DNA from: Entomortierella parvispora E1425
Lineage: Eukaryota; Fungi; Mortierellomycota
Direction: 5' to 3'
Length of the DNA: 64,000 nucleotides
Assembly: GCA_020891255.1 (NCBI GenBank)
Contig: BQFW01000012.1
Span: 1,302,001 to 1,366,000, forward strand
Positions within the stretch are counted from its first letter, which is position 1. The number at the start of each line of letters is the position of its first letter. The notes under the pieces were generated by a model. The model had not been told where the DNA came from and did no database searches. It saw only the letters and a list, made by a program, of their open reading frames with translations. The translations under genes and the position numbers were made by a program. Below are positions 11,749-57,800 of this stretch, in pieces.

Positions 11749-12610
11749 GTTGAAGAGAGGTTGAAAGGGAGTAGAGTTCTGTGTTGCCGGAGAGAGGGGA
11801 ATGTTGAGGAAAGGAGGAGTGGTTGGATGGTATGGCCTTAAGAAAAATACATTTAAATATGAAAAAAGGCCAGCTTTTGTGTCCATGACAAATCGAGCTG
11901 CAACAGGGGACTTAAGAGAACAAAAGACGTGCGTGATTAGAAATCGAGATCTTCGTTACGGGGATGATCTCTTTTGACGCGTCTGGTAGTAATTGACCAA
12001 TGCGAGGTGGGCTGAGGCGTGATTTTTATTTTTTTTAAAAACTGCAAAGTTGATCATGCTCTGAAAAAAACAGCAAAGTTGTTGGCGTTTCCAGAGATCT
12101 CTGGCCAATCGTTCATGTTCAGTATTCGACGAGAGAAAAGTGGATTCTGAGAGTCTTTTTATTCACAGTCTGTCAAGTCTAAACCGTGAGCAACTCAGCA
12201 AAGAAGGCGTAAGCATGAGAAGGGGGAGAGGGAGAGAGGGAGAGAGGGAGAGAGGGCGGGAAAAAAACAGGCTAATGTGTGAATGAAAAGAGTTGTTATG
12301 TCTGCATGATGAAGAGAGCTCGCCTCCAATATGTACATGAGGTGTGGGCGAGTATGAGTGAATGCGTAGTTCGAAAGAAGAGAGCGACTCAATTGGGGGT
12401 TGACATGGGTTCCCAACTGAACATGAAATGAAGAGATATCCCGTGGAGGGGGGAGGGGAAAAAGAAGGGGAAAAAATGGTCATCATATAATACAGGATGG
12501 CGCACAAAGTGAAAGAGAGAGACGCTCGGGCGTTTGCTCCCAAGTTTTTCCCTTCTCGGCTTTGCCTTTCCATCTAGGTCGTTAAGGACATTTGACTGTG
12601 CTTTGTGTTT

Positions 12611-15600
12611 TTAAAAAAAGGTAAACTTGCTGAGGCTTCTTGAATGGTGGAGTTTGCCTGGCTCAGTGCCCACAGATTTAGTGTAGAGCTCCTCATCATC
12701 GAGGACATGCGTGTCTGTGATGACCCGCGAGATGAACGGATCCGGTTGAATCTCGTAGGGTTTGGATTGGAACTGCATCACGGTAGAGATCACCTCGGTC
12801 AAGAGGCAAAACTTTTGCCAGTGGATCGTTCCATCCTGCCGAAAGTCGCGGTTTCCCTCGCTGATCGACAAAAGATCGCCAAGGTGGACACCCCTAAAGA
12901 CATCAGAATCAAAACAAGGGCCAATAGTCGGGTTAGGAGATGAGGACTGGACATTGGCAAGCCAATGAATAGTCAGAGGAGCAGCGTGTACTTACAGATA
13001 AGGAATGCATGGCAGTGGCTGTGCCTTCAAGGCGGCGCGGTATTCGAAAAAGCTTCTTTCGGAACTCATAAGATGTTCCAATTCTTTGAATGTGGCCCAG
13101 ATCTCCTTTCCTTGGAGAAGTTCGCGAGTCTGGACCAAGCGATGGATCGACGAGGTGTTCATGGCCCCGATGATGGCCATCGTTGTGTTGAAGTTGCCCA
13201 TATCTCGAAGCAACTAAAGATAACGAAGGAAAAAAGTCAGATATCGTCGGTGTGTAGACGATCATGTGCTGGAGACCGTTCAGACTTCTTACCTTGGCAA
13301 TGTTGATGAATTTCTCCATCATCTTGGCGCGGTTCTTTACCTTGGCAGGCGACAAGATCATGGTGCCGACCCACGAAGAGATGAAATTGAAATGGGAAAT
13401 ACATGCCTGAAAGGCGGCAGAGCCCTTCTTGGTCTTCCAAACTTGGCGCAACATGTCTCTTGGCTAGAAATGAGGACAAAGAGAAAACGACCTGATCAGT
13501 TTTGCTGGTCAACGGTAATGAATGTGGCCAGCAACATCTGTTACCCAGCGCCACTCTCCTACCTTTAGCTTCTTGAACAGCAAAAACTCAACACTGGTCA
13601 ATTGGGCAGCGATAGCACCGTCCTTGATGTCCATGAAGGGCGTGTTCATGGACAGATAATCAATGGGTGGTGGTGGGTGGTGGATAGAGTTGGCACCAGA
13701 TCCCTGGAGAGGATGAACAGGGGTCTCATCCGTAGTTTCCCGAAAGATAAGAGTAGCATTCGAGCCTGTGTTGGAAACCCCTTGCGAGGCGGCAGAAGAG
13801 CCGTTAGGCATGGGTCCAGGCAAGGGAGCGCCTTGTTGCCCAAAGGATCGCTTCCGGTAGGCTTGGCTGCTGCTGCGTTTGCTAATGAACGGAATCGGGG
13901 TCATGGGCTGCAGCTGATGAGGAGTGGCATCACCCTCCGTGAACGCGGAGGGAGCAGGAGTCGCAGTGACGGCCGCCGGGCCTGAGGAGACGGACGAGGC
14001 TGAGCCACGTCGATTGGAAACAAAGGCTTCCATGGCACAAGGGGAGGCATGTACCAAGGAACCGGTGCTTGATCGTCGGTCACGAGGCAACGGTTGGAGG
14101 GATGTTCGAGTCTGTGGCCGCAAAGGCGAGGTGGAGGACGATGTCGACAAGGCACCGCTGTTGAGTTGTGGGCTCCGAGCGAGGCTGTCAAAACTCATCT
14201 GCGTGGCCTTGACTTCAGGCATGGCGTCATCTTCGTCAAATGAACCCCACTCTCGGTCCTCATCCATATCAGCCTCAGTGGCGAAAGCAAGCGTATCATG
14301 GAAGCCAGAGTCGGTGTCCTCGTCCCAGATGGCCCCCACGCCTGGTGGGCAAGAGATGGAAGAGTTTCTTGAATCAGAGTTGGAGTCACCAAGGGGCCAA
14401 CGCCAGTTGTTGAAGTGATGGATGGAAGACAGAGGCACAAGCTGCACGTAGATCTCGTGCAAGCAAGGAAAGAGAGCCACACGATCTCTGAGGAATCTTG
14501 CCAAGTGCTGCCTTGTCTGACGGTGGATCAGATCATTGGGATGGTGCTTGAGCCAAGCCATCAGAATGGCGCAGATGCTAGCCACCATGTCATTAAAAGA
14601 AACACGACAACGTTAGCGCGTGTGCTACATGATTCTGATGGACGCGTCGTATTGTTTGTAAAAGGAAGATGACAAACAGACTTACCGGAAGCGGGTGTTC
14701 TTGGCCTCCTCGTCGTCATCGTCTACAAACTCTCCCAACTCCTCAAAGCGCTCAATGAGCATGTCCAAAAGTTCACGGGGTCGAAGGAATTTTCGGTAAA
14801 TCATCAAGAAGACCTTGGTTTTTGCGATTTGCTCTATAAATAAACAATCGACGCCCAGTCAGACCGCCATGCGGAGAGCAGGAAAAGAGATAGAGAAGGT
14901 GGTGGAGGGAAATGAAAAAAAAAGAAAACAGAGAAATGAAAACAAAAGGGGCAGGAGCCGCAGGAGAGGGGGTGAGCAGCCGGGATTCAGGAGGAGGGAG
15001 GTAGGAGCCAAGATGGAGACAAATGAAAATAGAGAGGCATAAAATGAACGAACGGACAGGACCAGTTAGATCAGGACGATACAGGACATGACAGGGACGA
15101 CAAGAGAGATGTAGATGGATGTGATGCAAAAGGGCAGCAAGGGGATTTGGAAGGGGGGGCAACGAAAACGAGTTTGCTTGCTGCGAGGGTTTTCTGCAAC
15201 TGCCACATGCGAGGGTGTGTGCGTGGGACATGGGGTCATGGGAAGCGATGAGATAAAGAGAGGGTGAGGCACATACCAATTGAATTAACATAGTCTGGGA
15301 TCGTGAGTTGGTTGACCAGATTGTCGAGGGTCACCCCTGGGGCCGATTCACTATGAGGTAAGAAAAAAACATTGCCCTGCATTAGCACCCACTCCATTGG
15401 CAAGGAACATTGCTGATATTGTGGCTGTGGGGGCTGTGGGTATCCACATCCATCCCTTCTCCATTATCACCGCACCCCTTACCAAGAATCTTTGGAGCTT
15501 CTTCGAGATCCTCCCAGGAATCCGGAATCAGACACAGACGAGGAACTCAGCGGCGAGGTGGGCTGCATTGGTGTTCGACCAAGAGCGGCTTGCTGCTGCC

Positions 15601-17029
15601 AACCATTGAATGTTGGTCCTGCAGAGACCATTCCCCCAGTGCCATTTCTTTCTTTGTGAGGAGCAGCGATAGATAGGGGGCCCAGAGGAGGCATATCGAC
15701 AGAAAAGGGTTGGTAATCCTCTGTGGAGAAGTTTGCTGTCAGTGGAAGGGGCGCAAACTGAGGAAGCGGTGGAAGCGTCGTTGCTGAAGATGTAGGAGAG
15801 GGAAGGGTCATAGCAGCGTTGGCAGTGACAGTGGATGCACTCGACACGGAATGCGATCGTTGACTGACATGTCCATTCGCAAGTGATGAATTTGAACGAT
15901 GGTCGACAGGTGAAGCTGACAAGGACTCGGTATCAGATACACGCCAAGAACTTGAGCCGCTGTTCAATGTCAGTGCAGACATCGAGAACGAAGGTGTGCA
16001 CGAGGCTGATCGCGACTGTCGCGTCATTCCCATGGCCGAGACTGTGTTATTGTTGAAAGTGCTTGCTGAAGGGGTGGAAGTGTTGGACGTTGAGAATGCT
16101 GGAGATATGGTATGTACAGTGGCGGTGGGACTAATGGAAGAGTGAGGTTGGGAGAATGGAGCTGAGAGGTAGTCCGTGGAGGAGGAATTGGAGTGGCCAA
16201 AGAGTGAGCTGTAGAAAGTGGTTGGGGAGAAGAAGGCGGAGGATGAGGATGAAGTAGAGGACGATAGCGAGGGTGAGGACGAGGTCGATGAGGATGCAGA
16301 GCAGGACGAGGCGCAAGACGCACGCGGATCCTCTGTGGTGACGGTCGAAACGGTGTGGTGGCGCAAATGGTCCTTGGCGCAAGAGCCGGGGCTGGGCAAG
16401 GACAAAGAGCGACCACCGCCACTGAGGCTCATACTGGTGTCTGTTCCGGTTCCGGTCCTCGGATTCGATTGTGAGGGCGAGGGAGATCTGACAGCAGCCA
16501 TTGACGTCGTAGAAGCTGATGTCGTTGTTATCGTGGCTGTTGTTTCGAGTAGATAAGGCAGGGGTTGCAGCGTGCTGGAAGAAAATGATCCAGTCGAGGA
16601 CAAGGAGCGAAGCGGTGGGGGAGGAGGGGGAGAAAAACGTTTTGAGAGGGCCGAGATGGCGTTCTTGGCACGACTGGAAGTGCTGTTTTTCCGCTCCCTC
16701 TTTGTCTCTGGAGTGCGAAAGATGTTGTGGACAGTGAGAAGATCCTTCTCCCTGTCCTTGTCTTTGTCCAGAAAAGAACATGAAGTCGAGTCGATGCTGC
16801 TGAGGCTGAGAAGACTATTGCTACTGCGAATGCTGCTATTGCTATTGCTGAGGGACTCGAGAGGGAGGGAGGGACGGCGTGGATGACGTTGCTGCTGTTG
16901 CTGTTCCTGTTCCTGGTCAAGAATGTCGTGGCTCAAAAGATCGCTTGTGGATCTGTGCTTTGACTTTGAGGATGAGGAAGATGGAGTATGGCCCTGTGAC
17001 CCTTGTAAAGAATGTTTGAAGGAGAGCAT
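12611..17029 (-). CDS. RasGEF-domain protein (long Ser-rich N-terminus, REM domain, CDC25-homology domain), about 7 exons
   Basis: REM: VTLDNLVNQLT...KVFLMIYRKFLRPRELLDMLIERF...ICAILMAWLKHHPND. CDC25-HD: IAAQLTSVEFLLFKKLKPRDML, ISHFNFISSWVGTMIL, MMEKFINIAK, GNFNTTMAIIGAMNTSSIHRL, PCIPYLGVHLGDLLSISEGN. The start and the very C-terminus (SRSLSKFTFF*) are less certain. Confidence 0.85.
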
Positions 17030-17289
17030 TTGGGTGTATGAAGTAGAGTGGGCTGACAGATGGACGTTGTGAAATGGAGTGGCCGATATGGAGAGAAGAG
17101 GAAGCGCGTGTGGGGATTGTGGTCTTCTGTGCAACCAGTGAAAAGGCTGTGGAGTAGAGCAGAGCGAAAGAAGATTGTGTGCAGACAAGAGACGGATCTG
17201 AGAGGACAAATGATGGACAATAAATACAAGTCGAAGAGAAGATGAGAAGACAAATACAAGGTGAACGTGAATGACAAATAGAAAGAGTA

Positions 17290-17760
17290 CAGAGAGAAGA
17301 AACAGTGGAGAGAGAGAGAAGAGATAGAACGCGTAGGAGAGGAGGCCCAATCGATCACACAGCCTTGGATCGCGTGCAAGCAAGCAGGGAAGGATGCTAC
17401 TGTACGCACAAGGAATGGGATCCAAAGAGAGGAGAGAGGAGAGAGAAGAAGAGAGAGAGAGACAGAGAGAGAGAGAAGGAGAGAAAAGAGAGAGATAGTA
17501 GAGAGAGTAGAGAGAGAAAGAGAAAGAGGATACAGATTAGAGAGTGTCGTACGAACAAAGGAATTGAAACACGACCCCGAACAAGGGAACAGGAAGCAAG
17601 AAAGGAAGAAGAAAAGAAAAAGAAAAGGAAGAAACAACAACGATTGAAAGGCAGGCAGGCGGGCAGTCAGGCCAAGGAAGTAAGAGAGGAAAGTAAAGGG
17701 TCAAATGCAAAGGAGGGGAAAGGGGGCAGCGAGAGGAGGGACGGAGAGGGGGGAGGATCG
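17290..17760 (-). repeat. Long polypurine/polypyrimidine tract (GA-rich on plus) upstream of the RasGEF
   Basis: About 470 bp dominated by GAGA/GAAA runs, almost free of pyrimidines over long stretches. Confidence 0.8.
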
Positions 17761-18400
17761 TGTTGTCTCCAAGAGGAAAGGAAGGAGGAAGGAGTCGGTC
17801 GAGTCGAGTCGGGTTACGGATAATATTTCAAACAGCCGACTGGGTGCCTCTCGTCAAAGGTCGAATGAAGCGATGGGTGCGATGCAATGCAATGCAGGGA
17901 ATGGACAAAGGACGAATGAGCAAGCAGATGTATGAATGACAGGAGAGATGAGAAGAAAGAGATCTCTTGTTCTTCTGCCGCAGGAAAAGGGGGGAGCAAA
18001 GGCTAGAGTGGTGAGCGAAGGGGCGTCGCCACAGTCTCGACGCGTAGAAGACACACGCGCATGGCCAATGGCAGGCGTGGGTGCAATGCGGGGACTCTTG
18101 GGGATTCTTGGAGTTGGCGACTGTGGCAGTGGGAAGGATGCTCTGCCCCTCTCTCCCTCTTCCCTTCCTTCCTGCCGATACCGTCGGTCCCATCCGCATC
18201 CAACCTTCTCGCCAGTCACCAGGACTCATCCCATCCCAGTCGGGACGAGACGCGACATGGTGAGCTGAAGGCAAGGACTGTCTGGCAAGCCCGACGATGC
18301 ATGACACAACCCGAAGCATGGAAGGGAAGGCAAGGAGCGAGCGGATCGGGGGGGGGAGGTCTCTGGAGAGAGATTGACGACATGAATGACATGAATACAA

Positions 18401-51814: not shown

Positions 51815-54800
51815 TTACTGACGCTGTTGATGGTATTGTTGTTTTGCGTACAGGCTTGTAAAGTTCCGGAGACACTGCTCCAGTTCCTCCTTCATCAAGG
51901 GCTTGCTGATGTAATCATTCATACCCGCCGCCAAACACTTTTCACGGTCGCCCGGCATCACACACGCCGTCATGGCAATGATGTACGGTCGATCGGTCGT
52001 CGTGCCCGAAAGGTTCTTGCGGATATAGGTCGAAGCATCCAACCCGTTCATCTTGGGCATCCAAATGTCCATAAAGATGAGGTCAAAGGGTACAATCCGG
52101 TGTTCGTGATGGGGGCGTGGGTCGTTTCCAAAGGAAGTCGTCTGTGTAGGTGCCGTAGGAGGGGTCGTGGGAGGGGTCGTAGGCGTCATGGTAGACGGCG
52201 TTGTTGCGGAAGGAGTGGCGCCTTCGAGACTTGCCAGGGATGCGCCCAGTCCCGAATCGGTCATATCCTGGCCCCGGCCTCGGTTATCGGACGGGTATCC
52301 TGAAGAGAGGGCCGTTGCCGTGTTCAAAGTGCCCTGCTGCAACTGCAGGGCCGCAATCTTCTTCTCGATCAATTGCACTGCTTCCTGGCCATTGTTGGCC
52401 GTCTCGGGTTCTACCCCGAGTCGAGCCAGCATCTTGGAAGCCACCAACAAATTCACAGGGTTGTCGTCCACAATCAGGACCTTCATCTTGGCCATCCGCC
52501 GAGCTGTGGAACTCGACGCGGCCGCGACGGCAGCCAACGATGGAGACTCGTACCCCTTCTTGGCCGCATTGGACGCTCCCACACCCCCGGCAAGGAGATC
52601 AGAGCCGGAAGCTGCCGAAGAGGCAGCTCCCTTCTTGCGTCGTGCAGCAGCAGCTGCGGCCATCGCTCCTCCTCCTCCTCGACTGTGTTGGGGAATAGAG
52701 TACCTTCGAGCGGTGGAAGAGTCTACAATATCATCAAAAGGAGATCTCGGTGACTTGGGCTCGACCAACTGCTCTTCTTGTTGCAGCGGCAGCTGTTTTC
52801 CCATTTCGACACCAGGCGCTGATGTGGTCCGAGAGCGACCATTCCTGTTGGGCTCTACCCCAGTCTCTGCAGAAAAAGGCGCCTCCGCAGCTCTCGAAAC
52901 AGAGTCTTCCCCCTGGTTAGAGAGGCTCTTTACTGTGGGGCGATTCACAACATCGGGTGCAAACGTCAGACTGTTGCCCATAGCCTTGGAGGACGCTGAC
53001 GCTTTCACGCGCGCAGGCGGAAGGAGGGTCATTGTAACGTCCTTGAGTGACCTTTGGAACTGCAATGCCGGTCCTGCGACTGACAGGTCCTGCTGGCGGT
53101 CAACCAGTTCTCCTTCGTCTTCCTCGGGCGTTTGCGCCAGGGGAGGTAAGGGCATATAGATCGGATACTGAGCCAAAGTCTGCAGGACCTTTGAGTGTCG
53201 AATCGGCTTTGTGAAATACACTAGCTGAAGGAAGACGTCTCCAGCCTGAGAAACGCGTGGAGTATTGTTGGTCGACGACGCCGACGTTGCACCGACATCG
53301 CCCAAAACGCCACCATTCAAGCTAGGGCGACGAACAGACGCGGTCGTGGAATCTGTATCGCTGCTGCTGAAATAGCTGTTCCGCTTGACAGAGATTGCTG
53401 GCGAGGATGCTCCAGTGGAAAGATGATCGACACTGCTGATACTCTGCTCATAAAACGTAGTGGGCTGTGTGTAGGGCGTCAACAGGTATCCAGAGCCAGT
53501 GACACTCGAGCGACCACTGATACCGACACCATGTCCAGCCTGGCCTGTTCCCAATGGCATCAAATTTCCTGTCGGTGTTCGGTCCAAGGCAAGCGAGGAC
53601 GTCGAAGAGTCGGCATGATGCTGATACATGCTTCCGTAGGTAGGGATCTTGCTTAAGGTACGATCGATGGTAGGTCCGGTTGTAGAATCAGACATGCTTA
53701 CAGGGTTGCTTTGCAGAGGGGGGGATCGGGCTGACAGGGGTGCAATCATTGACATCTCATCACCCGTGTCGCTGCTGGAGATTCTCTCGCCGCTCCATCG
53801 TGAGCCCTCTGGACGAGCATGGCCGTGGAAGGAGGTGGAGGCGGTAGCGGCGCTACAAACATCTCTATAGTTCTTGAATAGAACCACAGGGATAACAGGC
53901 ACCAGCTGCGTTTCCTCCTTGGGAGCTGCAGAAGCCTGAACTGATGCAGCAGCATTGCGAATCACATCCAAAAGACCCTCGGGCGTGCACGCGACGGAGC
54001 CATTCAAATCTGTCTCGACGATCAACGCGTCCATCTTTTCCTGGATACTTTGAATCGTACCATCGGCCCCAGGTTCTTGCAAATAAGGAACGACTTGATC
54101 ACTCTGCAAGATCTTGACCTCGGTCATGTTCCAAGAGTCTGCTCTCATCTTCCATGCTTCCCGACCCATCTTGCAGTCGTCCACAATGACGATATGTTTC
54201 TTGCTCAACTTGGGGAGCTCAAACTGCTCCCCATAGGTGCGACAACCCACTGGGCTGTCAAGGACCAAGTTGACATAGAACGTGGATCCTACATCGGGTG
54301 TACTGTCCAACCAGATGGTTCCACCCATCATCTCGCTCAACCGCTTGCTGATGGCCAATCCCAACCCTGTACCGCCGTACTCGCGAGTCGTGCTCTCATC
54401 TACCTGAGAAAAGCTCGAGAACAACTTGTCGAATCGATCCTCGGGAATACCAACACCTGTATCCTTGACTGAGAAAACTAGCCGCACGGGCCTGGTTGGC
54501 AACACGGCTGCACATACAGAATTGACCCTTGCGAGTCTTTCGGATTTTGGCAAGTTCAAAACGTCCTTTTCGGTCATGACAGCGTCCACCGACTCTTTGA
54601 GAGACTGCGAACCAAAAGCAGGAGGTAACTGAGCCTTAGACTCGGAGCCTACATTCTTCTTGCTAGTAGACCCGACTGTGTCTGCTCCAGTGATCGTTGT
54701 TGGTGAAGAGGCAGATGATGGTGGCATCAGTCGAGTTGGGTCCACAGTTGAATCCAGTTCTGACTCACTCTCGAACCGAACCTCTTGATGAGGTTCGATC

Positions 54801-57800
54801 GACACCGAGACGATGATGGAGCCCTCCTTTGTAAACTTGACTGCGTTGCTCATCAGATTCAACAAGATCTGGCGAATCCTGGTCACGTCGCCCATGATCT
54901 CCACGGGACAGTTGCTGTCAATCTCATAGACAAGACTGAGATTCTTGGCCATGGCTTGAGCACTGATCAGGTTCACGGCCGATTCCATGACAAAGCTTAG
55001 ATCCAAGAGTCGATTCTCCAGTTTCAGATTGCCAGACTCGATTTTTGAAAAGTCCAAGATATCGTCGATGACTGTCAATAGCTGGTTGCCTGAAGACTCG
55101 ATCGTCTCTGCGCACTCGGCCAGTTCCGGATTTAGCTTGGAATCGAGCAAGATACGGGACATGCCAATGACAGCGTTCATAGGCGTTCGGATCTCATGAG
55201 ACATGTTGGCCAAGAAGTTTGACTTTGCAGTCGCTGCAGCCTCGGCTCCCTCTTTGGCCTTTTGGAGGTCGACCAAGAGTCTGTGGGTCCTTGCTCGCTC
55301 TTCTTCAAGCTCAACCGTTCGCATCTGAAGATTTCGGGTCCTGTCTCGGACAAGATCCTCCATGTCATTGCCGTACCTTTCGAGCATGGCAGCCATGCTG
55401 CTGATAAAGTCACTTGATTTGTGGGGGTTGATATCGTTGATGCGGGCCAGCATGGCTGTGAAGTGAGGTCGTGAAAGAGGATCCCGGGAGAGACAAAGCT
55501 GGATGAGATGGTTCATCTGTTCGATGTTCATTCGGTCCTCTGTGGAAAGTGTAGAGTCATCAGTGCTCATGAGTGTTGGTCGGAGATCCTGTTCCTGCAC
55601 CTGCTGAATAATGTTGGGCTGCTCTGGGTAGTCGTGGTATGGCGAACGACGGGTCAGAATCTCGTTAAAAATGATTCCAGCACTATTTTTTTTAAAAAAA
55701 AGCCCTTGGTTAATACCCATCGGCTGCTACAATAAAGCAACACTATTCAGACAAGAGATAAGAGAGGGGAGAAATCTCACTGTACCTGTAGAGATCGCCT
55801 CTCTGAGTTCCCACGGCCTCGTATCCTCCTGTCTTTCTTAAATGCAAACATTCGGGTGCGGTCCAAAGCAGGGGCATGGCTTCAGATCCGTCAAGACTCT
55901 GTTCAAACCCAGAGTAGTCCATTACATCCGACACGCTGCCATACGAGCCAGCGCCTTGGGAGGGTGAGCCAGAACTAAAGCGACTGCTGTTGCTGCTGCG
56001 ATGTTTTCCAGGTGACGAAGGGGAAGATGTACCGGCAAGAATCTCTTCTCCACCTACACTCATAGCCCACTCTGCATCGTCAGCACGAGTAATACCCGAA
56101 GAGCCGGTGGCTTCAAGATCGCCAGTACGGTTTTCATAATCCCACGCCTCCTTGCTCTTCCTGCGGGTATCGCGCCCAAAGCTAAAGATACCCTGAGACG
56201 AGGGCTGGTGCTCCACCTGAGAATGTTCCGGATCCGAGAACCAGGACAAGGGGCCAGTACGTTGAGAGCCATTCTGATCAATCTGTTGTTGGCTGGACGG
56301 TTGCAGGTTGTTGTTTTGCTGTGACTGGTAGAATTCATCCAGTCCATAGCCTGCAATCTTGAGCTCCCATCTGGACGAGATCAAGCAGTTCATACTCGTC
56401 AAGCGCCCATGAAACCCAATCTTGGACATGTGCAAAAACTCCATTCCTCTGCAAAGATCCTGCATGAACGAGAACTTGAAGAGCCAGGTGAATTTGTGAT
56501 CCATGTTTGCCAACACTGAAGAGAGAGTACCCTTGGGAAGATATTCTAAAAGACATAAAAAAAAAGAAGTTATCAGCGGTTGGTCCAGCCATACGCCACG
56601 CAAAAAGCTCGTACGATGATCCATACCTGTAACAACGCAGATGTTGGGCGCAGTTATACAAAGGCCCACAAACTCGACTAGCTTTGGATGACGAAGCTCT
56701 CGCATGTTGTAAATCTCCCTGCGAAGCTCAGATGTGACAGCCACCTTCTTGTATCCAATCTTTTTGATAAAGACAGGCATGCTGCGCCAAGTTCCAACTG
56801 CAGACGATCCACGCTTCATGACCAAGGAGAACTGACTTCCGCTCAGTGCCTGTTGAGCAGACTTTGTGTTGGCACTGAAAGAAAGAAAGAAAAGAAAGGA
56901 GTCACTCCCTTAGTACGATATTCATCCGTGCATTTCTTGCGATTGATCACCAATCTCATCTGCTGTGGATAATCATAATTGGGGACTTACGAAGATCCTG
57001 AGCGCGCGCCAACACTTGAGACTGGATTGCTTCCGGTAGGATTGCTCGTGTGTTTGGACGAATGAGGCGACTCGACATCGCGGTTCTCTGGTGTGGAAGG
57101 GTCTATAAACTCCTTTTCCGCAAAGGGCTGATCCACGTCATCGAGGGTGATGGCAGGAAGAACAAGACCTTGGAGGCCCTTTCCAGCACTCATGCGGGGG
57201 GTACCAAAAGTTCGATCAGGTTCTCCTCCGATACCGCTGTACAGGAGCTTGGCCAGGTCGAGCTGCCACGAATCATCGTTCAACATCTTTTCGGCCAAGG
57301 AACGCTTTCTCTTGAACCAACATCCAAACACCAACAGACAAGCTGCAGTTGCAACAGAGACAGGGATCAAGATGGCCATAAGCAAGGTAGAGGTGCTCAC
57401 TATTAAAAGTAATACAAGAAAATGTGTTAATAGCTGCCATCTCGTTTGGACAGTACTGCGGTGAAATGGTACGTGGTTGCTTACTCTTTGAGGACGAGCG
57501 ACAAGAGTCGTCATCACAAATGGTGCAGATAGTTTGGCCGTCCCCATCCGTGGTATCTCCAGGGCTACAGGCCGTGCATTGCGTGACATCCGTTTGGTTA
57601 CTGAAGGAGCCACGAGCACATCGTGTGCATACTGACATAACCTTGATATGTCCAGCAGCGTCCATGCAGAGCATAGAGTTGGAATTCGACGAGGACGGAG
57701 TATCAGTTAGAGTGCCTGAGGAAATAAGTGAAGAACCGGAAGACATGCCAAGCGTGGATGAATAGTACGAGCCAGCATCACAGGCGTGGTCGACGACCTG

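Follow-up and report, generated by a model that had tools for sequence, protein, structure and literature searches.

In animal receptor guanylyl cyclases (rGCs) such as GC-A (NPR1) and GC-C, a transmembrane (TM) helix is followed by a kinase-homology domain (KHD), a helix and the output domain. The KHDs of these receptors are inactive negative regulators (PMC1435932). The helix behind them belongs to the signalling helices (S-helices), which carry an ERT signature, were defined upstream of histidine kinases (HKs) and guanylyl cyclases and couple sensors to both; the position behind a Ser/Thr-kinase-like domain was stated for animal rGCs only (PMC1592074). The RGC group of kinases was 'believed to be metazoan-specific' (PMC3019232) and was absent from a set of 30 fungal proteomes (PMC2838846). 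Here we describe a gene on the minus strand of a 64,000-nucleotide stretch of the Mortierellaceae fungus Entomortierella parvispora E1425 (assembly GCA_020891255.1, contig BQFW01000012.1, positions 1,302,001 to 1,366,000; hereafter the window, within which coordinates are given) that repeats the rGC order with another output. Its product carries a kinase fold homologous to rGC KHDs, devoid of both catalytic Asp residues, between a single TM helix and an rGC-type signalling helix that runs unbroken into the DHp helix of a hybrid HK. Judged from its sequence, this kinase fold is catalytically dead and quite probably acts as a regulatory relay.

The gene is interrupted by introns, and its parts are laid out as follows.

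From 57486 upstream in the gene, minus strand: ectodomain exons, encoding type-1 periplasmic-binding-protein (PBP)-like domain(s) and a Cys-rich ephrin-receptor-like module
57317-57385, minus strand: predicted single TM helix, a hydrophobic run in the translation, followed by a basic stop-transfer sequence (KRKR) and a juxtamembrane stretch of about 100 residues
56991, minus strand: end of the exon that carries the TM helix and juxtamembrane stretch
56628-56874, minus strand: KHD exon A, with a degenerate Gly-loop region, beta3 with its retained Lys, alphaC Glu and the N-lobe to the hinge; best PDB match GC-A, junction matched by orthologs
56760-56774, minus strand: VFIKK, with the beta3 Lys
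56546-56626, minus strand: intron of 81 nt, GT..AG, in frame and stop-free; the 27 residues that it encodes are absent from orthologs
55786-56545, minus strand: KHD exon B, with the hinge, alphaD-E, catalytic loop HGR..N, GYG, activation-segment insert and APE
56403-56411, minus strand: HGR at the HRD position
56343-56351, minus strand: GYG at the DFG position
55851-55859, minus strand: APE
55683-55785, minus strand: second KHD intron, GT..AG; orthologs read continuously across the junction
55418-55682, minus strand: KHD C-lobe, alphaF to alphaI
55199-55417, minus strand: rGC-type linker or signalling helix, unbroken into the DHp helix, from alignment to the GC-A linker
55196-55198, minus strand: H-box histidine codon of HisKA, the phospho-acceptor
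51815-55228, minus strand: output region with HisKA, HATPase_c, low-complexity spacers, receiver domain and stop codon
55031-55228, minus strand: HisKA (Pfam, 78 bits)
54263-54490, minus strand: best stretch of HATPase_c (Pfam, 95.5 bits)
51869-52492, minus strand: receiver domain, with its Asp in an ..FMD.. motif (Pfam Response_reg, 72 bits)

Exon borders were derived from GT..AG sites and reading-frame continuity, and the exon joins of the annotated Linnemannia exigua, Mortierella alpina and Podila orthologs fall at exactly the same points. The motifs quoted in a first-pass annotation of the window, made from the letters alone (VFIKK, HGR, GYG and LLWTAPE), are all present in the minus-strand translation and become contiguous only once the two GT..AG introns are removed. 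The open reading frame reads straight through the 81-nt intron, whose retention would add 27 residues at the junction between N-lobe and hinge. One exon of 1288 codons (51815-55682) encodes the KHD C-lobe, the long helix, HisKA, HATPase_c and the receiver domain; the H-box His, HATPase_c and a receiver with its acceptor Asp are all kept, as in hybrid HKs. The output half (51869-54490) is broken up by long low-complexity stretches rich in Ser, Thr, Pro and Ala, and HATPase_c and the receiver each match Pfam in two separated pieces (for the receiver, exon residues 1064-1111 and 1198-1271). Unlike in rGCs, the output is HisKA-HATPase_c-REC and not a class III cyclase, and the ectodomain is of the sugar-type PBP kind (Peripla_BP_4 / Peripla_BP_1) and not ANF_receptor. 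The Peripla_BP_4 and Ephrin_rec_like matches of the window ectodomain both lie under the Pfam cut-off; the ectodomain of the ortholog P0144 matches Peripla_BP_4 at 2e-16. Full-length orthologs measure 2416-2707 aa.

Kinship with rGC KHDs was apparent in several kinds of comparison. The window exons were searched one by one, annotated orthologs serving as full-length proxies for the spliced protein, and GC-A was the best PDB match of all three pieces of the domain: exon B at 8e-14, exon A at 1.6e-05 and the piece with C-lobe and linker at 3.3e-07. For exon B, GC-A was followed by GC-C (5e-10) and then LIMK1 (2e-08), and the match of the C-lobe piece to GC-A extends past the kinase fold into the GC-A linker. 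Because exon pieces match Pfam PK_Tyr_Ser-Thr (5.5e-07 and 5.6e-12) as well as GC-A significantly, the domain is not a chance resemblance. The first-pass annotation had called for a profile search against rGC KHDs. A profile of the KHD and linker of 31 family members scored GC-A at 227.6 bits and GC-C at 155.9 bits in PDB, well above every other kinase there, the best of which were CTR1 (100.3), JAK (99), BRAF (96), LIMK1 (94) and ABL1 (93 bits). A word-based search with a Mucor KHD yielded only three rGCs.

An exhaustive search with the profile returned 1361 representatives at E<=1e-30. The top 150 of them comprise about 20 fungal KHD-HKs and 79 single-domain proteins with KHD, linker and cyclase, 44 of which have an ANF-type ectodomain; these cyclase-linked matches score roughly 150-170 plus 100 bits per domain. 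The remaining top-150 matches are tandem-kinase proteins whose N-part reaches only 30-70 bits per domain. Their high whole-protein scores were discounted, the per-domain scores showing them to be sums of weak domains. In Diphylleia rotans P0166 and similar tandem two-kinase proteins, the first domain is unusually high on the KHD profile (about 100+55 bits) and yet falls outside the RGC clade described below.

Structure comparison pointed the same way. It was made with the AlphaFold model of the M. alpina ortholog, not of the window protein; the kinase core of this model has a predicted local distance difference test score (pLDDT) >90 and ends in a long C-terminal helix, and Foldseek ranked the intracellular domain and KHD of GC-A first, at 8.6e-16. 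A feature search of the ESM-Atlas with the ortholog KHD, skipping HK families, retrieved nothing but generic clusters of TKL and other kinases, at about 0.92, and does not discriminate.

In a quick tree of 184 kinase domains, the cyclase-linked and fungal KHDs formed a clade with an SH-like approximate likelihood-ratio (SH-aLRT) support of 99. A careful maximum-likelihood tree (88 rows, 272 columns, LG+C20+F+G4) united 35 cyclase-linked KHDs, 25 fungal HK KHDs and the metagenomic P0158 at 100/99 on a stem of 0.79, and window exon B grouped with its orthologs. Left out of this RGC clade were three ordinary TKL kinases of the same genome, plant FERONIA-type receptor-like kinases and protist tandem kinases. 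The affinity to rGC KHDs claimed by the first-pass annotation thereby survived the test of a placement among ordinary TKL kinases. That an ordinary fungal TKL kinase joined to an HK decayed convergently and came to resemble rGCs in this way deserves next to no credence: substitutions to HG-x and x-YG could in principle occur repeatedly, but the long-stemmed clade, the lead of >55 bits that rGCs hold over all other kinases in PDB, the homology of the rGC linker outside the kinase fold and the scores of only about 50 bits of the fungus's own TKL kinases all contradict it. Sequence, profile, fold and phylogeny thus support the assignment of the window domain as an rGC-type KHD.

The catalytic set of active TKL kinases (beta3 Lys, alphaC Glu, HRD Asp, catalytic-loop Asn and DFG Asp) is incomplete in this KHD. 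Arg has replaced the HRD Asp and Gly the DFG Asp; the Lys, Glu and Asn are retained. Since the catalytic Asp residues are absent, the domain is predicted to be inactive. As in animal rGCs, HG-x stands for HRD and x-YG for DFG, with the same three residues kept, and the replacement of the HRD Asp that marks the RGC group (HG-N/R/S) is present as HGR. The first-pass annotation had proposed the very degeneration pattern of rGC KHDs, and this holds for the lost HRD Asp; it does not for the DFG position, where the RGC group keeps the Asp as DYG. GC-A and the Mucorales relatives of the window protein retain this Asp (17 of 53 relatives, mostly Mucorales, carry DYG), whereas the window KHD has GYG. 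It also has Arg for the Asn of HGN.

The lesions were surveyed in 53 complete KHDs of the fungal KHD-HK family. None of the 53 has the complete catalytic set, 52 keep the alphaC Glu, and three subfamilies carry three different sets of lesions.

Orthogroup of the window gene: beta3 Lys; HGR; loop Asn kept; GYG; activation segment of 138-159 aa
Mortierellaceae paralogs: beta3 Arg; mostly HGD, with the catalytic Asp kept; loop Asn mostly kept; mostly GYG; activation segment of 80-107 aa in most
Mucorales: beta3 Lys; mostly HG-(C/S/R/N/L); loop Asn mostly lost; mostly DYG, often in the string LKITDYGL that is also found in GC-A; activation segment of 23-62 aa

Together, the lack of any complete set and the subfamily-specific lesions indicate that catalysis is not under selection, and the pattern fits a domain whose fold is maintained for something other than catalysis and whose ATP site decays in a relaxed, lineage-specific way. 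We regard it as highly improbable that the domain is an atypical but active kinase, using displaced catalytic residues to phosphorylate its own activation-segment insert or the HK module. The retained Lys, Glu and Asn, the catalytic Asp kept as HGD in the paralog group and a Ser-rich insert that could be a substrate speak for such an activity; they are outweighed by the loss of both catalytic Asp from the window protein, the absence of the full set from every family member and the inactivity of the closest relatives, the rGC KHDs (PMC1435932, PMC1592074).

Binding of Mg-ATP by the window KHD is doubtful because the DFG Asp is missing, unlike in rGCs. Nucleotide binding, if any, would have to be weak or to do without metal; gating by ATP is possible, but its likelihood is lower than in rGCs or in the relatives from Mucorales. 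The KHD could also bind no nucleotide at all and be purely a structural spacer or dimerisation scaffold without any ATP checkpoint, perhaps a client of HSP90-CDC37 like the KHD of GC-C. This is a possibility that we take seriously while leaning against it. The HRD and DFG positions hold Arg and Gly, the Gly-rich loop is degenerate, and the loss of the beta3 Lys as well in the sister paralog group shows that the family tolerates the loss of ATP-site residues. A structure of the GC-C KHD is present in PDB (8fx4), which we take to be its complex with HSP90-CDC37. On the other side, the orthogroup of the window gene retains the beta3 Lys, the alphaC Glu and the catalytic-loop Asn, and ATP binding without metal occurs in some pseudokinases that lack the DFG Asp.

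The passage from the KHD to the output offers the second line of kinship with rGCs. Between KHD and H-box, the sequence hardly varies across the family, and the signature residues E, Y, N, E, V, R and T are invariant in 31 sequences. GC-A and the family have in common LLWTAPE and the linker motif Y-A-N-x-(L/M)-E-x-L-V-x-x-R-T, which reads Y-x-N-D-M-E-x-L-V-x-x-R-T in the window. A coiled-coil linker or S-helix with an ERT-type signature thus directly follows the KHD, as in the RGC group; it aligns to the GC-A linker, is modelled as one long helix and places 49 residues between the DRT signature and the phospho-His. The fungal KHD-HK family is a second context in which an S-helix follows a kinase-like domain.

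If the KHD is the regulatory relay that its position suggests, the receptor would work as a dimer. Ligand binding to the PBP-like ectodomain would reorient the TM helices, the pair of KHDs would hand this change to the parallel coiled coil of the signalling helix, and the helix would set the autophosphorylation state of the HK, from which phosphate would reach first the receiver domain of the same protein and then the HPt/response-regulator relay of the fungus. The KHD would serve here as a regulatory relay and not as an enzyme, probably a repressive one as in rGCs. Of the checkpoint between receptor and HK that the first-pass annotation had imagined, the relay position stands; gating by ATP or phosphorylation is unproven, and GYG weakens its ATP part. 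Several points weigh against the relay reading. Inactivity, nucleotide binding, dimerisation and the direction of regulation are predictions from sequence, and the change of the DFG Asp to Gly departs from the rGC pattern. The splice junctions rest on GT..AG sites and ortholog gene models. In the tree, the window KHD is represented by exon B alone and the outgroups are limited, with no canonical human TKL or TK rows, for which the PDB profile search with its broad sampling of human kinases partly compensates.

The activation segment sets the window protein apart from GC-A. Between GYGL and PLLWTAPE lie 155 residues (55875-56339), rich in Ser, Gly and Gln (21% Ser, 11% Gly), which GC-A does not have. 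The whole activation segment measures 161 residues, against about 22 in GC-A, and an earlier figure of roughly 130 Ser/Gly-rich residues was a fair estimate of the excess. An insert of this size occurs only in the orthogroup of the window gene. It is poorly conserved, conservation being confined to a few islands (R-x-W..SD, a patch rich in Ser and, directly before LLW-APE, SG...S...D), and is predicted to be disordered, with pLDDT <50 over 123 residues of the M. alpina model. It is an add-on of this orthogroup that most plausibly serves for phosphorylation or docking. In GC-A, the phosphosites used for regulation are found outside the activation loop, at the N-terminal edge of the KHD; at the same edge, the orthogroup carries a Ser-rich stretch, R-G-S-S-x-V-G-T. 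As a candidate for phospho-control this stretch is at least as good as the insert; regulation by phosphorylation at either place is speculation.

The same core of KHD and helix occurs outside animals and fungi. In the ichthyosporean Chromosphaera perkinsii, P0228 combines ANF, KHD and cyclase; in Pigoraptor chileana, P0156, the best cyclase-type match at 265 bits, combines a Bmp/PnrA-type PBP, a Kelch propeller, KHD and cyclase; and the environmental proteins P0192 and P0200 combine teneurin-type EGF repeats, KHD and cyclase. The core of these unicellular holozoan and environmental proteins falls in the same clade as that of the window protein, and their ectodomains vary. They differ from the fungal family in their origin outside fungi and in the cyclase output that all of them have kept. 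Because cyclase-linked KHDs with varied ectodomains occur in unicellular holozoans, the core predates animals and has been reused with several ectodomains and two outputs, which bears out the earlier idea of a portable module. These distributions move the origin of the RGC kinase group back to at least the base of Holozoa, possibly of Opisthokonta.

How the module came into fungi is a separate question. In the careful tree, fungal monophyly received 94/82 and the fungal clade with P0158 99/95. P0158 and P0282 are JGI metagenome contigs of 1.6 and 2.3 kb that end right after the KHD, and they are the closest relatives of the fungal clade not labelled as fungal. Within the RGC clade, fungi group with the Chromosphaera cyclase, two environmental cyclases and long-branch nematode cyclases at 86/87, and internal relationships are weak. 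A tree constrained to hold all cyclase-linked KHDs in one clade was not rejected (delta lnL 2.2, approximately unbiased (AU) test p 0.49).

We tentatively suggest, below an even chance, that the cassette of TM helix, RGC-type pseudokinase and signalling helix was an output-agnostic transmission unit in the opisthokont ancestor; holozoans would have kept it with a cyclase and Mucoromycota with an HK, and other fungi would have lost it. In that case, the rGC KHD would not have originated in animals, and the way in which it couples could be studied through a phosphorelay read-out. The competing scenario is horizontal transfer: the ancestor of Mortierellomycotina and Mucoromycotina would have obtained the module from a holozoan or other protist, the cyclase giving way to an HK, or the fusion following the transfer. 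The case for transfer comes close to evenly balanced. Named KHD-HK representatives are all in only two fungal subphyla, the nearest tree neighbours are an ichthyosporean cyclase, environmental cyclases and a metagenomic fragment, and vertical descent would demand losses across many fungal lineages. Yet the fungal clade is not nested in a crown animal subfamily, the topology with fungi as sister to all cyclase-linked KHDs is the one that the AU test did not reject, and Mucorales and Mortierellaceae are divided by a deep split and carry lesion sets of their own, which implies a long history within fungi. The 'ancient opisthokont' origin of the first-pass annotation is consequently not shown, given this AU result and the restriction to two subphyla.

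Within fungi, the family is, as far as named hits show, confined to Mortierellomycotina and Mucorales. Named members belong to Mortierella, Podila, Linnemannia, Dissophora, Actinomortierella and others among Mortierellaceae, and to Mucor, Phascolomyces, Cunninghamella, Lichtheimia, Absidia and others among Mucorales; the closest match to the window protein, 74% identical, is from Mortierella sp. NVP85. Automatic annotation has given some of them the names 'RGC/RGC protein kinase', 'Receptor-type guanylate cyclase gcy-13' or 'guanylate cyclase', so that the resemblance is already visible in databases. The literature searched contained no paper describing an rGC-type KHD in fungal HKs, an absence that is not proof of its being unpublished. 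The genome searched (38.9 Mb, 20 contigs) has at least 11 HisKA loci, of which two carry a KHD: the window gene and a paralogous KHD-HK on contig 11 (1538198-1539622). The paralog has its KHD in one exon and belongs to the subfamily in which the catalytic Asp is kept (HGD), the beta3 Lys is changed to Arg and DFG to GYG. The only cyclase-domain locus of the genome (PF00211) lies on another contig and not near a KHD.

Among described fungal HKs, those of groups XV and XVI ('MS-HK I/II', Defosse 2015 / Kabbara 2019) are hybrid HKs restricted to Mucoromycota, like the present family, which may correspond to one of the two groups. The text consulted of HK surveys that list groups XV/XVI leaves their N-terminal domains undescribed and makes no mention of an rGC-type KHD (PMC6324907, PMC4965123, PMC5285503). 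Group X HKs (S/TKr-AAA-GAF-PAS-HK; e.g. C. albicans Chk1) likewise have a kinase-like domain upstream of a hybrid HK. Unlike the window protein, they are cytoplasmic, with AAA_16, GAF and PAS domains; the Pfam search found neither AAA nor GAF in the window gene. The same genome encodes a group-X-type HK on contig 1 (617500-627499), with AAA_16, GAF, PAS, HisKA, HATPase_c and an upstream fragment of a kinase-like C-lobe. This fragment scored 2.7 bits against the KHD profile, and a kinship of the KHD with the group X kinase-like domain beyond the general fold was rejected on that score.

An RGC-type pseudokinase and signalling helix thus drive a two-component HK in a large fungal group that includes the Mucorales agents of mucormycosis, and the module is older and more interchangeable than earlier kinome surveys assumed. 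With its naturally exchanged output, the family lends itself to asking how a transmembrane signal travels through a pseudokinase to a coiled coil. Its three subfamilies, which have lost different ATP-site residues, provide a natural series in which the importance of nucleotide binding can be tested.

Elsewhere in the window, positions 12001-18000 show a strong strand asymmetry, far above that of the rest, with a GC skew of up to 0.43 and an AT skew of 0.25 in 16001-18000, which suggests a purine-rich repeat or a low-complexity coding stretch.

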